From contig NIVC01002742.1 in the NCBI GenBank assembly GCA_002269645.1, positions 63,517-127,516 on the forward strand: a DNA stretch of 64,000 nt, written 5' to 3'. The stretch comes from Macrostomum lignano. Lineage: Eukaryota. This document shows, in pieces, positions 50,423-56,400 of the stretch (position 1 is the first letter of the stretch; each line of letters starts with the position of its first letter). A program made the translations under genes and the position numbers. Below the pieces are notes generated by a model that worked only from the letters and a program-made list of their open reading frames with translations, ran no database searches and was not told where the DNA came from.

Positions 50423-53400
50423 ATGAGCAGCTGTCAGCTGCTGACACTGTTAGCTGTGGCGCTGGCGTCTGTTACCGCGGCCCAACAGTTGACAGCTTAC
50501 AGTAAACTGTGCAAGACATTGGAGCTGACCCACCTGGACTATGCCAGCCACCTCAATGCTAGCAGGTTGCGAGACCGACTTGAGGAAATGGTCGGTGGAT
50601 GCCAGTACCTTCATGGCGATCTCATCATCAGCTGGTGGGGCGTGGATCGAACCACGGGCCGTCAGCTAGGCGGACAGCTGCGCGATATGCGGACGGATTT
50701 TCTTGACAGGTTGATTGAGATTAGCGGAAGATTGATTGTGGCGCAGGTGAGATGGACTGCTGGGTCTCAGCTGTTTTGGCATCGATATTAAAGGATGGGT
50801 AAATGCGTGGTTATCACCATCTTCTGAGCCCCTGTGACCGCATTTTTTGTTGCTTTTGTTTTGTTGCTGTTGTTTTTATTGTTTTTGTTGGTAATGTTTT
50901 GCTTTTGTTGTTGCTGTTCCTCTTTTTCTTCTTCTTCCAACGCCCCGCATCGCTACTCAGGCAGCTGGGGAGAGGGCACATCAAAGGCACCCCAGTCTGC
51001 GCAGGAGCGTCAGGACGTCCTCCGGATGGAAGAGGATGTCCGGCGCTCGAAGGCTGGCCCCGGAGGGGGTCCCCTTGTCGCCTCGCGGACAGTGATGGAA
51101 CTGCGCAGACTCGCTGGTAGGGGAGACGGTAGGGTTCTGTCATGTCCTTCCGGGTCCACGGGCGCGGCGTAGACGTCGTCTCCAAGCCCCCGTTGTTGCT
51201 GTTGCCGTTGTTGTTTTTTGTTGTTGTTGTTGCTGCTGGTGGTGCTGTTTCTGGTGATGAAGGGCCGCAGCCCAGTGTTCCGGTGCAGCGCTTTGATGTA
51301 CCAGCGGCCCAGGCTCGATTCCAAGTGAGGTCACATTAATTTGGGACTAAATTGGAATCTCGGCTTGGCTCTGCTCGTGCAATTAACGCCCTTGAGGCCC
51401 AACCCCCAAGGCACAGTGAAGTGTACATGCCTAACGATAAATAAAGTTAGGGCCGCTGTACACTCCTGTGTGAGTGTGTCTGTGCGTATGACTGCGTACG
51501 TATCCGCGCGCTTGTGTGCCTGCTCAGGGGAGTCGGCGGAATGGGCAGCAATGCCTCTCGCCGGTTGTGTGACAATGTCGCTTGAAGTGCGCCCAGGTGC
51601 ACACAGCCCAGTGACCCAAAACTTCCTCCCTTTCCAGTCCAACCTGGCCCGTCTCGAATTGCGCAACCTTCGCGCAATCCGCGGCCACGGCACCAGCGAT
51701 GGAGACCGGCCAGCCATCGAGCTCAGCCAGTGCGCTCACCCCATCCAGCTGGTGCTGCCCCGTCTGGCCGCCATCGTCCAGGGCGGCGTGCAGCTCTACA
51801 GCGCCACCGACCGGGGCCTCTACTGCCGCATCACGCGCAGCGTAGTCTGGTCTGCGCTGTTCCAGCAGCCAGGGAAGCAGCGGGTTGACTACGCCGGCGT
51901 CAGCAGCTGCACCAGGGACAGCCGGCCAGCCGCGTGTGACTGCGCTGGAGGCAGCGCCAGCGCTGTCGCTTGTCACCCCGACTGTCTCAGCGGCTGCTGG
52001 TCTGCCGACACTGGAGCCTGTCAGGTTTGTCAGATTAGACCCGGCACCAGCCCCTTCAGGTAGCAGCATCCCCCCAACTCCTGAATCTTCAGGTAGCATC
52101 ATCCTTAACTCCTGAATCTTCAGGTAGCATCATCCCCAACTCCTGAACCTTCAGGTAGCATCATCCCCAACTCCTAAATCTTCAGGTAGCATCATCCCCA
52201 ACTCCTGAATCTTCAGGTAGCATCATCCCCAACTCCTGAATCTTCAGGTAGCATCATCCCCAACCCCTGAATCTTCAGGTAGCATCATCCCCAACTCCTG
52301 AATCTTCAAGTAGCATCATCCCCAACTCCTAAATCTTCAAGTAGCATCATCCCCAACTCCTGAATCTTCAGGTAGCATCATCCCCAACTCCTGAATCTTC
52401 AGGTAGCATCATCCCCAACTCCTGAATCTTCAGGTAGCATCATCCCCAACTCCTAAATCTTCAAGTAGCATCATCCCCAACTCCTGAATCTTCAGGTAGC
52501 ATCATCCCCAACTCCTAAATCTTCAAGTAGCATCATCCCCAACTCCTGAATCTTCAAGTAGCATCATCCCCAACTCCTGAATCTTCAGGTAGCATCATCC
52601 CCAACTCCTAAATCTTCAAGTAGCATCATCCCCAACTCCTGAATCTTCAGGTAGCATCATCCCCAACTCCTAAATCTTCAAGTAGCATCATCCCCAACTC
52701 CTAAATCTTCAAGTAGCATCATCCCCAACTCCTGAATCTTCAGGTAGCATCATCCCCAACTCCTAAATCTTCAAGTAGCATCATCCCCAACTCCTAAATC
52801 TTCAGGTAGCATCATCCCCAACTCCTGAATCTTCAGGTAGCATCATCCCCAACCCCTGAATCTTCAGGTAGCATCATCCCCAACTCCTGAATCTTCAGGT
52901 AGCATCATCCCCAACTCCTGAATCTTCAGGTAGCATCATCCCCAACTCCTAAGCTTTAAGATCAGGGCTCTCAGTAAGCTTAATAACTCACTGGATCTCC
53001 ATTCCCCCCCCCCCCCTAAGTCCGACGGTCGCTGCAAGAAGCGCGCCTGCGCCTTCTGCTACACCCGCGGCCTGGCCCTGGAGGAGGAGTGCTGTCACTC
53101 AGCCTGCTTGGGCGGCTGCGTCGGTCCCAACGCCAAGGACTGCTTCTCCTGTCGCGGCGTCTCATACAACGGCGAATGTCGCGAGTCCTGCCCGAAAGAG
53201 TACTACGACACGGAGACCTCCAAGGTCATTGAACTGCCGGAGCCCATGGTTCAGGTCGGTTAATCAATAAGCAGTTCTGCAAATTCCACTGACTCCAATA
53301 CTGTACGCAGACGCGCACTCAAACACATGCTCACACAGTGTGTACAGCGGGCCCTTGTGACTTTCTAATGTACACTGACGGATTCGAACTCAGGTAGCTT

Positions 53401-56400
53401 CAGTTGGGAAATCCTGATTCTCTCCCCCCGCCATCAGGTCGGCAACGTCTGCAAGCGCAGATGCCCGGCCCCTTTCGTCCTGGACTCGCGCCGTCGCTAC
53501 TGCCTGGCCGAGTGTCCGAACGGCGAGCTGCCAGTCGAGGGCAACTGCACCGCGTGCGCCGACACCGCCGACGGTGCGACCTCCGGCTGCCGTGTCTGCG
53601 AGAGCGCCGAACGTCAACTGGACGACAATCTGGCCAGCAGCTTCGCCAACTGCTCAGTGTGGAAGCTGAGCAGCTCCTTCAACCTGGACGGCGCCGCCAT
53701 GTCTGACAGAGCCTGGCTAGGCGTCGCTTCGGCCAGGATCATCTTCTCAATCAGGGTGATCGTCAAGAGAACTGAGGAGCGAGCTGCCAACTTGTCCGTT
53801 TTGCGCCGGTGAGTAAAGAAGCCTTTCTGAGATTTCTCTGCTTTTGAAGTTTGTAGGATATCTAAGAATCTCAAGCCATCCTTAATTTTTTATCTCTAAT
53901 CCAATATTAATCCCGAGTCGTCCCCAATCAATATTGAGTCCCAATGATCACGAGTCTTAATAATCCCGAGTCTCAATATAATCCCGAGTCCCAATGATTT
54001 CAAGTCCCAATGATCCCGAGTCACAATGATCCCGAGTCCCAATGATCCCGAGTCACAATGATCCCGAGTCACAATGATCCCGAGTCACAATGATCCCGAG
54101 TCCCAATAATCCCGAGTCCCAATAATCCCGAGTCACAATGATCCCGAGTCCCAATAATCCCGAGTCACAATGATCCCGAGTCCCAATAATCCCGAGTCCC
54201 AACGATCTCGAGTCCCAATGATCCCTAGTCCTAATGATCCCGAATTCCAAGTGATAGTCGTTCGGAGACCAGAAATTCTAGTTGTCCCTAGTCACAAGCT
54301 GATCTCAATAATCCTTGCATCCCGGAAGGCTTGGCTACGTCTCCGGTGAGCTGATCATCAACCAGCTGAACGCCAGTTACCTGGCACTCAGCGGCCTGCG
54401 CAGCACCCAGCGGCTGTCCATCTTCAACATCCGCGGCCTCTGCCGGGCCTGGTTCCCGATGGAGCACCTGAACTCAACCAGCGTTGGCTTCCCAGTTAGC
54501 TACGGCAATTTAGAGTTCGCCGACTGTCCCGACGCCGCTTGCCACCCGCTGTGCCGCGGCGGATGCTGGGGCCCCGGGCCCGGGCTGTGCGTGGCCTGCG
54601 CCAACGCCTCCGTGGATGGCGTCTGCTATGCGGACTGCCGGCAGGTAAATATTATCCCAGATCCCGCATCCCAGATCCCGCATCCCAGATCCCGCATCCC
54701 AGATCCCGCATCCCAGATCCCGTATCCCAGATCCCGCATCCCAGATCCCGCATCCCAGATCCCGCATCCCAGATCCCGCATCCCAGATCCCGCATCCCAG
54801 ATCCCGCATCCCAGATATCGCATCCCAGATCCCGCATCCCAGATCCCGCATCCCAGATCCCGCACCCCAGATCCCGCATCCCAGATCCCGCATCCCAGAT
54901 CCCGCATCCCAGATCCCGCATCCCAGATCCCGCATCCAAGATCCCGCATCCCAGATCCCGCATCCCAGATCCCGCATCCCAGATCCCGCATCCCAGATCC
55001 CGCATCCCAGATCCCGCATCCCAGATCCCGCATCCCAGATCCCGCATCCAATGACTCCCTCAACTGGCACCCATTGCAGGCTGGCCGGTACCGCAGCCCA
55101 GCCGAAGAGGACGCCGGCCGCTGCCTGCCCTGCCACGCCGAGTGCGGCGAATCCGGCGGCTGCTCCGGCCCGTCCGCGCATCAGTGCGCCACCTGCCGCG
55201 CCTACCGACAGGACGGCGCCTGCGTGGCCAGCTGCGCCGGCAACCTGGAGCCGGACACCTACGGAGTCTGCTATCCGGCCTCCACCATGCGGCTCGGGGT
55301 CTTGGCGGCCGGTCTGGCGCTGCTGCTGCTGCTGGCCGCAGTGGCCGGCCTGGTGGCCTGGCGATACTATCAGAGACGGCTGCACCGGTACGACTGCCGG
55401 CTGTTGATACCTGGGATAATGATTCACCTGGGATAGTCATTCACCTGGGATATTCATTCACCTGGGATATTCATTCACCTGGGATATTCATTCACCTGGG
55501 ATATTCATTCACCTGGGATATTCATTCACCTGGGATATTCATTCACCTGGGATATTCATTCACCTGGGATATTCATTCACCTGGGATATTCATTCACCTG
55601 GGATATTCATTCACCTGGGATATTCATTCACCTGGGATATTCATTCACCTGGGATATTCATTCACCTGGGATATTCATTCACCTGGGATATTCATTCACC
55701 TGGGATATTCATTCACCTTGGATATTCATTCACCTAGGATATTCATTCACCTAGGATATTCATTCACCTGGGATATTCATTCACCTGGGATATTCATTCA
55801 CCTAGGATATTCATTCACCTTGGATATTCATTCACCTAGGATATTCATTCACCTAGGATATTCATTCAACTGGGATATTCATTCACCTAGGATATTCATT
55901 CACCTGGGATATTCATTCACCTGGGATATTCATTCACCTAGGATATTCATTCAACTGGGATATTCATTCACCTGGGATATTCATTCAACTGGGATATTTA
56001 TTCAAATTTTTTGCCTGCGCATTTCACTTCCACTTTCTCCCCACCGCAGGTACGACATGGTGGACCTTGACGAATACCTGGGCGACGCCAACAGTCCCAA
56101 CGACATGGCGCAACTCCTGATTGTCAACGACGACGATCTCATAAAGCAGAAAGAGATCGGCAGCGGTACATTCGGCACGGTGTACAAAGGCATCCTGCGC
56201 TCGGAGACTGACTGCGGCTACAAGGAGCTTCCCGTGGCCATCAAGGTGTTGAAGGGCAGCAATCCGAAACTCGGACAAGAACTGCTTAACGAGGCCAGCG
56301 TCTTGGCCAGGTGTGTCGCTTGGACTGGGACCTTGTAGTTAGCTAGTTAGTTAGTTAGTTAGTTAGTTAGTTAGTTAGTTAGTTAGTTAGTTAGTTAGTT

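Follow-up and report, generated by a model that had tools for sequence, protein, structure and literature searches.

In this report, we present evidence that the third intron of a receptor kinase gene in the flatworm Macrostomum lignano probably arose by the antisense insertion of a short, transfer RNA (tRNA)-type retroposon, similar to a short interspersed nuclear element (SINE), into a continuous coding sequence. The gene, BOX15_Mlig012367g1 (product P0019), encodes an EGFR/ErbB-type receptor kinase and lies on the plus strand of contig NIVC01002742.1 (assembly GCA_002269645.1), within the stretch of 64,000 nucleotides that was analyzed here and is called the window below. The closest solved relatives of the gene product are LET-23 of C. 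elegans and the ectodomains of human ErbB3 and ErbB4. A hand-built gene model was found to contain nine coding exons and eight introns. The coordinates of all features are collected in Table 1.

The 9-mer TCAGGTCGG is found twice at the boundaries of intron 3, once across the donor (53251-53259) and once across the acceptor (53434-53442), in the form TCAG/GTCGG that the original prediction had described. Only a single GT..AG register is possible inside this repeat, and it sets the intron at 53255-53437. The removal of these 183 nt leaves exactly one copy of the repeat, as had been claimed, and joins GAG CCC ATG GTT CAG to GTC GGC AAC GTC TGC. The spliced frame is open (...ELPEPMVQ/VGNVCKRRC...), and reading through the intron leads to stop codons immediately. 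The junction is carried by the deposited models P0019, P0001, and P0020, which represent three loci. Exact spliced mapping of the deposited proteins on the second copy of the gene (locus L002, product P0001, 99.7% identical to the window gene) and on its homeolog (locus L005, product P0020, with exons that differ by 0.8% from the window gene) returned the same eight introns, base for base. Intron 3 measures 182 nt in L002, compared with 183 nt in L005. The deposited M. lignano models were assembled from RNA-seq reads with StringTie/TACO and from a de novo transcriptome (PMC5730564), and the intron 3 junction therefore has indirect transcript support.

The donor of intron 3, GTCGGT, is not a consensus donor. 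It departs from the consensus at +3 (C) and +4 (G), and it duplicates the opening of exon 4 (GTC GGC). A donor this poor would be expected if it had recently been copied from coding sequence, and not if it had been selected for splicing. The codons that open exon 4, GTC GGC AAC, are conserved in the paralog P0002. The terminal Gln codon of exon 3, CAG, is specific to this gene, and the paralogs have Arg (CGC, CGA) at this position. Because TCAG stands in both copies of the repeat, the target most likely read CAG/GT already when it was hit.

The two repeat copies enclose an insert of 174 nt. When read on the minus strand, it opens with TGGCGGGGGGAGAG..., continues through the B-box-like motif GAGTTCGAATCC and a body, and closes with ...CTGCTTATTGATTAA, and its A/T-rich tail (..TTATTGATTAA) adjoins the 9-bp repeat. 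The RNA polymerase III (Pol III) B-box consensus used for comparison is GGTTCGAANCC. The features of a tRNA-derived SINE that can be recognized at the insert are a B box, a weak A box, an A/T-rich end, and the 9-bp duplication. The core of the insert is related to SINE-B, a family with a full-length copy elsewhere in the window that opens with a G-run and ends with CTGCCTCTAATA; the A/T-rich end of the insert is comparable. Local alignment of the insert with SINE-B gave scores of 61-68, relative to 28 ± 4.4 for dinucleotide shuffles, and none of 500 shuffles scored as high. The identity was computed to be 77% over one ungapped piece of 57 nt and was estimated by eye from the alignment to be ~70%, with several gaps. 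In its layout, the insert appears to be a whole small SINE, and it would be a diverged relative or sister subfamily of SINE-B rather than a family-B copy, because it has a B-box head of its own and only ~107 nt can be aligned. The description of the insert in the original prediction as an inverted fragment of SINE family B therefore holds for the antisense orientation and for the relationship to SINE-B, but not for membership in the family. Judged from its letters, all of intron 3 would be SINE-like except for one copy of the 9-mer. A search of the window with ARAGORN and Rfam returned neither a tRNA nor an RNA family, at the insert or elsewhere, and the predicted RNA fold of intron 3 shows nothing unusual (z = +1.0).

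The pyrimidine tract TTCTCTCCCCCCGCCA that precedes the acceptor is the reverse complement of the G-rich 5' head of the element. Together with the CTGAT motif adjacent to it, this tract may provide the branch point and the pyrimidine tract of the intron.

The events that would account for this arrangement are as follows. The element would have entered at ...GTT CAG^GTC GGC..., where the uninterrupted exon site would read GTTCAGGTCGGC, presumably by target-primed reverse transcription, and 9 bp of the target would have been duplicated. The upstream copy would then provide the exon end CAG together with the donor GTCGG, and the downstream copy would provide the acceptor TCAG while restoring the exon start GTCGG. 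Because the repeat copies supply both junctions, splicing would remove the element and one copy of the repeat without disturbing the frame. The element itself would contribute the branch point CTGAT and also the pyrimidine tract, which corresponds to its G-rich head read on the other strand; the antisense orientation would thus add what the duplication lacks. The gain would fall in the Macrostomum lineage, after the loss of the ancestral bilaterian EGFR introns and before the homeolog duplication.

Three other origins bear on the same features of the intron. A staggered double-strand break repaired by non-homologous end joining could have captured a SINE fragment or its complementary DNA, with the repeat resulting from fill-in of the ends, in the manner proposed for Daphnia. 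We consider this route unlikely. Neointrons in Daphnia do carry repeats of 4-12 bp between one end of the intron and the opposite exon (PMC4202315, PMC3443670), and the repeat of intron 3 fits this range. In the same gene, the repeats of intron 6 (8 bp) and intron 7 (6 bp) come with no recognizable transposon, which makes a single non-transposon mechanism for all of them economical, and the insert is without ~55 nt of the 3' body of SINE-B, which also favors this route. Yet the insert retains the order of head, B box, core, and A/T-rich tail expected of a whole small SINE, unlike a random internal piece. In addition, elements of the SINE-B type make target-site duplications of such size in this genome, because the reference copy in the window is flanked by a perfect duplication of 17 bp.

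It is also conceivable that an older intron of ~60-80 nt already occupied the site and that a SINE fragment landed within it later, in which case the 9-bp repeat would be a product of chance and of the splice consensus. The four matching positions outside of CAG/GT include two donor bases off the consensus, +3 (C) and +4 (G), both of which equal the exon, and no mismatched donor-acceptor pair in the two genes analyzed attains 9 bp. The B-box head passes directly into the core, so that almost no sequence foreign to the element is left, and the site is free of introns in all of the paralogs and in Echinococcus. These observations make the older intron quite improbable, even though only ~107 of the 183 nt align to SINE-B, CAG/GT is itself the splice consensus, and another copy of SINE-B lies in intron 1 without defining that intron. 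A tandem duplication of exonic sequence with an AGGT in it, which is the best-documented mechanism of intron gain in a published review (PMC3443670), was rejected and is left with essentially no probability. Self-BLAST shows only the SINE-related match, and the exons share just the 9-mer.

The comparison with paralogs and with more distant EGFR genes supports the reading of intron 3 as a gain by insertion. There are two paralogs in M. lignano, with protein identities of 55% and 48%, and each has a duplicate (P0002/P0021 and P0003/P0023). All four of these genes are intronless, because each spans exactly 3 × (residues + 1) bases and translates straight through. The paralogs align without gaps across all eight junctions of the intron-bearing gene. 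For the distant comparison, the EGFR-like gene of Echinococcus multilocularis was the one gene dissected, and the intron positions of human EGFR were set beside it. The Echinococcus gene has 22 introns, none of which is located at the intron 3 site. Exact matches to human EGFR introns, in position and phase, were found for 6 of the 22, and two more are within 3 nt. The Echinococcus introns that flank the site, at ADCF/VCR in phase 0 and at CP[K] in phase 1, correspond to human introns 6 and 7. The phase-1 intron, which falls in the codon that follows CP, is the exon 7/8 boundary familiar from the EGFRvIII deletion. Neither of these flanking introns is present in the M. lignano gene, whose intron 3 sits 10 codons upstream of the phase-1 intron. 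No Echinococcus or human intron is nearer than this phase-1 intron, which lies 31 nt downstream of intron 3. The possibility that intron 3 is a conserved ancestral EGFR intron was rejected on the basis of these differences in position and phase. The proposal of the original prediction, that the intron was created by insertion at a CAG/GT proto-splice site, is supported by its absence from the intronless paralogs, from Echinococcus, and from human EGFR.

None of the eight M. lignano introns coincides exactly with any Echinococcus or human intron. The closest is intron 2 (52025-53020, phase 0, C-Q/S-D), at a distance of 1 nt from Echinococcus intron 4, which is in phase 1, and of 4 nt from human intron 5; an ancestral intron may have been kept here, or the proximity may be coincidental. 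In the annotation, the donor of the Echinococcus intron 4 junction (L004 3981/11601) is GA and thus non-canonical. The acceptor of M. lignano intron 2 (53000-53020) is preceded by a run of 13 C residues, and the opposite strand of this run resembles the G-run head of a SINE. This hints at another G-headed element in antisense orientation that may have given a pyrimidine tract.

The homeolog provides a limit for the age of the gain. Intron 3 is present in L005 with 3 substitutions in 183 nt, and exon 4 of L005 opens with GTT, a synonymous change from GTC that leaves the repeat at 8/9. The GTT codon is the derived state, because P0002 also has GTC. Since L005 has the intron with a repeat that has already decayed to 8/9, the gain predates the homeolog duplication. 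All three assembled copies of the gene contain the intron, with no presence/absence difference among them. Intron 3 is thus a lineage-specific gain that is older than the recent duplication and now appears to be fixed. The phrase "intron gain in progress" in the original prediction is not borne out, since the intron is found in both of the near-identical copies and in the homeolog and is spliced in three models.

The eight introns may have been gained after the paralogs split, or the paralogs may be retrocopies. A very improbable version of the second case is that intron 3 already stood in the common ancestor of the three M. lignano paralogs, or is older still, and that there was no recent gain. 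One or two retropositions would be fewer events than eight gains, the paralog tree is poorly resolved, and the proximity of intron 2 to Echinococcus intron 4 and human intron 5 indicates that at least one intron could be old. Distances and site patterns weakly favor the tree ((P0001, P0002), P0003), which requires either two independent retropositions or eight gains. The position of intron 3 is absent from Echinococcus and from human EGFR, so an ancestral intron would still be a gain, only an earlier one, and the recognizable SINE and the intact duplication at a synonymous site argue against an age that corresponds to 45-50% protein divergence. Relative to the bilaterian pattern, the intron is new in either case.

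The lengths of the boundary repeats were determined for all eight introns and are 3, 2, 9, 2, 5, 8, 6, and 1 bp for introns 1 to 8, respectively. The maximum among the 56 mismatched donor-acceptor pairs within the gene is 7 bp, and the observed sum was reached by 0.3% of donor/acceptor permutations (sum test, p = 0.003). In the 22 old introns of Echinococcus, the repeat averages 1.6 bp and does not exceed 6 bp, similar to their own mismatched pairs, of which none of 462 is above 6 bp. The difference between the two sets of introns is significant by the Mann-Whitney test (p = 0.003). The repeat of intron 3 is longer than either set of mismatched pairs provides, and a rough analytic estimate would put the chance of such a repeat at ~2e-4 per intron. 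A published review cautions that Drosophila shows no excess of boundary repeats once conserved introns are counted (PMC3443670).

Intron 3 is not unique in this gene, because boundary repeats are found at introns 6 and 7 as well. The intron 6 repeat is identical in L005 and extends, with a gap of 3 nt, to 12/15 matches as CACCG[CAG]GTACGAC, and the intron 6 donor duplicates the start of the next exon. The original prediction, which treated intron 3 as a special case, is incomplete in this respect, as none of the eight introns shares its exact position with Echinococcus or human EGFR. Introns 2, 4, 5, 6, 7, and 8 each consist of one tandem array between short unique ends (9-145 nt). The repeat units are a 31-mer (×29), a 16-mer (×20), a 14-mer (×28), a 17-mer (×35), TAGT (×71), and a 14-mer (×36). 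The lengths of the arrays differ by up to 2-fold between the window and L005, where intron 5 measures 435 and 799 nt and intron 8 measures 723 and 1448 nt, respectively. A search of the other introns for transposon-like ends or a dispersed family gave no matches outside of the gene. These seven introns are unrelated in sequence, save for a 14-bp minisatellite unit, ATCCCAGATCCCGC, that fills both intron 5 (at 54654-55049) and intron 8 (at 57237-57739) and occurs again at 15109-15156. The common unit could reflect sequence that moved between introns or one source element.

Several points weigh against the insertion of a SINE-like element as the origin of intron 3. Five of the nine repeat positions (CAG/GT) are ordinary splice consensus and the other four are not; the original prediction had itself noted that part of the match is consensus. 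Seven positions are constrained by coding or by the splice site, and for this reason the perfect repeat is a poor guide to age. The support for splicing is annotation and is indirect. The A box of the insert is weak, as TGGCGGGGGGA matches the consensus TRGCNNAGTGG at ~8/11 positions by eye. Only ~107 of the 174 bases (positions 57-163) align to SINE-B, at positions 175-301. No second copy of the insert was found, beyond that in the homeolog of the gene, in the M. lignano sequence searched (~145 kb), which comprised the window and loci L001, L003, L005, L006, and L007 (the latter ~80 kb). Because there is no second copy, the ends of the insert are only putative as true element termini flush with the repeats. 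The M. lignano background for boundary repeats is a thin sample of two other introns, those of the NUDT21 gene (2 bp) and of a nuclear-receptor gene (4 bp). To enlarge this sample, neighboring gene models were rebuilt from the span and the product length; one gene had a unique solution, with one intron, and another, for which over 100,000 solutions existed, was left out. Finally, the only controls for the human EGFR intron positions, which were derived from exon sizes, are four residues of the numbering (R297, G719, T790, and L858) and the six introns that match Echinococcus exactly.

The insertion of a transposon at an AGGT proto-splice site is an established model for the creation of introns (Yenerall & Zhou 2012, PMC3443670, Fig. 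1b), and indirect cases have been described in Oryza, Zea, Drosophila, and Oikopleura (PMC3443670). Intron 3 appears to be an unusually clean case of this known type, and the mechanism itself is not new. As in the model, the proposed insertion falls within AG/GT, a copy of the target lies on each side, the donor and the acceptor derive from different copies, and splicing leaves the coding sequence unaltered. Intron 3 differs from the other cases in that the element is a small, antisense SINE-like retroposon that would also donate the pyrimidine tract, and in that the host is a flatworm. The intronless paralogs serve as proxies for the empty site, and no true empty allele was seen among the sequences compared.

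Introners are transposon families that make introns throughout a genome (Gozashti et al. 2022, PMC9860276; 2025 follow-up, PMC12130899). Target-site duplications of 3-9 bp help to form their splice sites, and non-LTR (long terminal repeat) retroelements make up ~5% of the classified families (PMC9860276, PMC12130899). A survey of 3,325 genomes reported transposon-made introns in only two animal groups, and no mention of a flatworm or of Platyhelminthes was found in that paper (PMC9860276). Intron 3 resembles an introner in that a mobile element would have become an intron and a duplication feeds the splice sites. Introners exist as many near-identical copies in unrelated genes, whereas the insert has no second copy in the ~145 kb searched; we therefore do not call intron 3 an introner, because no family of copies is seen. 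The neointrons of Daphnia pulex are attributed to staggered double-strand breaks and have end repeats of 4-12 bp, many internal repeats, and fast growth (PMC4202315). The 9-bp end repeat of intron 3 and the tandem arrays in six of the eight introns are reminiscent of these, but the Daphnia cases are polymorphic and recent, whereas intron 3 is in all copies of the gene and its filler is a recognizable SINE-like unit.

In the exonization of antisense SINEs such as Alu, a homopolymer run becomes the pyrimidine tract of an acceptor. Here, a new intron would have formed in a former exon rather than a new exon in an old intron, and the tract of intron 3 would derive from a 5' G-run and not from a poly-A tail.

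Table 1. Features of the EGFR/ErbB-type gene, its third intron, and related sequences (window coordinates unless a locus is named)
Feature	Position	Strand	Description
Whole gene BOX15_Mlig012367g1	50423..58765	+	hand-built model, matches deposited models
Introns 1-4	50747-51637, 52025-53020, 53255-53437, 53809-54328	+	hand-built model
Introns 5-8	54645-55079, 55388-56049, 56311-56765, 57210-57932	+	hand-built model
Exon 3	53021..53254	+	furin-like cysteine-rich domain, reaching the dimerization-arm region; terminates ...GTT CAG
Exon 4	53438..53808	+	hand-built model and mapping of deposited models
Intron 3	53255..53437	+	183 nt, phase 0, GT..AG, weak donor GTCGGT
5' repeat copy TCAG/GTCGG	53251..53259	+	TCAG exonic; GTCGG is intron donor +1 to +5
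3' repeat copy	53434..53442	+	TCAG is the acceptor; GTCGG opens exon 4 (GTC GGC = Val-Gly)
SINE-like insert	53260..53433	- (sense strand)	174 nt; G-run head, putative B box, SINE-B-related core, A/T-rich tail
Pol III B-box-like motif GAGTTCGAATCC	53380..53391	-	by direct reading
Candidate branch point CTGAT and pyrimidine tract TTCTCTCCCCCCGCCA	53414..53433	+	branch A at 53417, 20 nt before AG
Intron 6 boundary repeat G/GTACGAC	55387..55394, 56049-56056	+	8 bp; identical in L005
Intron 7 boundary repeat GCCAG/G	56306-56311, 56761-56766	+	6 bp
SINE-B reference copy, full-length tRNA-type	63016..63384	+	369 nt, perfect 17-bp target-site duplication AAGCAAATGGCTCTGTT
Second SINE-B copy	51262..51609	+ (sense)	86% identical to the first; in intron 1, stops ~28 nt before the acceptor
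Paralog genes and duplicates	L001 3001-6276, L003 3001-6273, L006 10001-13276, L007 10001-13273		intronless

The 17-bp target-site duplication of the SINE-B reference copy (62999-63401; copies at 62999-63015 and 63385-63401) is a sign of fairly recent retroposition in the M. lignano genome. The SINE-B copy in intron 1 of the window gene has lost its tail, CCCTGCCTCTAAAAAAGCAG, which is retained by the corresponding copy in the homeolog (L005 4033-4399). More degenerate relatives of the SINE are located at ~48470-48660 and ~17130-17330. In exon 9, at ~58050-58060, the window copy has an indel of 1 nt relative to L002 and L005, which shifts the frame in the C-lobe of the kinase domain, so that the window copy is without the CWLPNPESRPNF... 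reading. Because of this frameshift, the deposited product of the window copy is only 932 amino acids in length. Either the assembly is in error here, or this copy carries a disabling allele. An apparent frameshift of 1 nt is also found in the last exon (46215-46235, ..AEFAV / ..) of the NUDT21/CFIm25-like gene at 44581-46353, whose single coding intron is the one with the 2-bp boundary repeat. Like the indel in exon 9, this frameshift suggests indel errors in the contig.

A wider reading of the gene is that an intronless, retrogene-like EGFR gene was re-populated by eight new introns, each seeded by an insertion that duplicated its target and most of them later inflated by minisatellites. We offer this reading tentatively and regard it as possible rather than probable. 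The duplications that would still be visible are those of 9, 8, 6, and 5 bp. The seven additional introns at unshared positions, several of them with boundary repeats, suggest that intron gain was not a single occurrence in the M. lignano genome, and a broader, ongoing process of intron gain may be at work in this species.

The origin of spliceosomal introns in animals is still debated mostly on the basis of indirect cases. The anatomy of intron 3 is legible, with splice sites from a duplicated target, a tract that would come from the inverted element, and a donor that has not been optimized, and two sister genes retain the uninterrupted state at the same site. The transgenesis and RNA-seq resources available for M. 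lignano make it feasible to determine at the bench whether an insertion with a duplicated AG/GT is sufficient for splicing. If the re-population of an intronless gene is the correct reading, the birth of introns by insertion would be directly testable in a transgenic animal.

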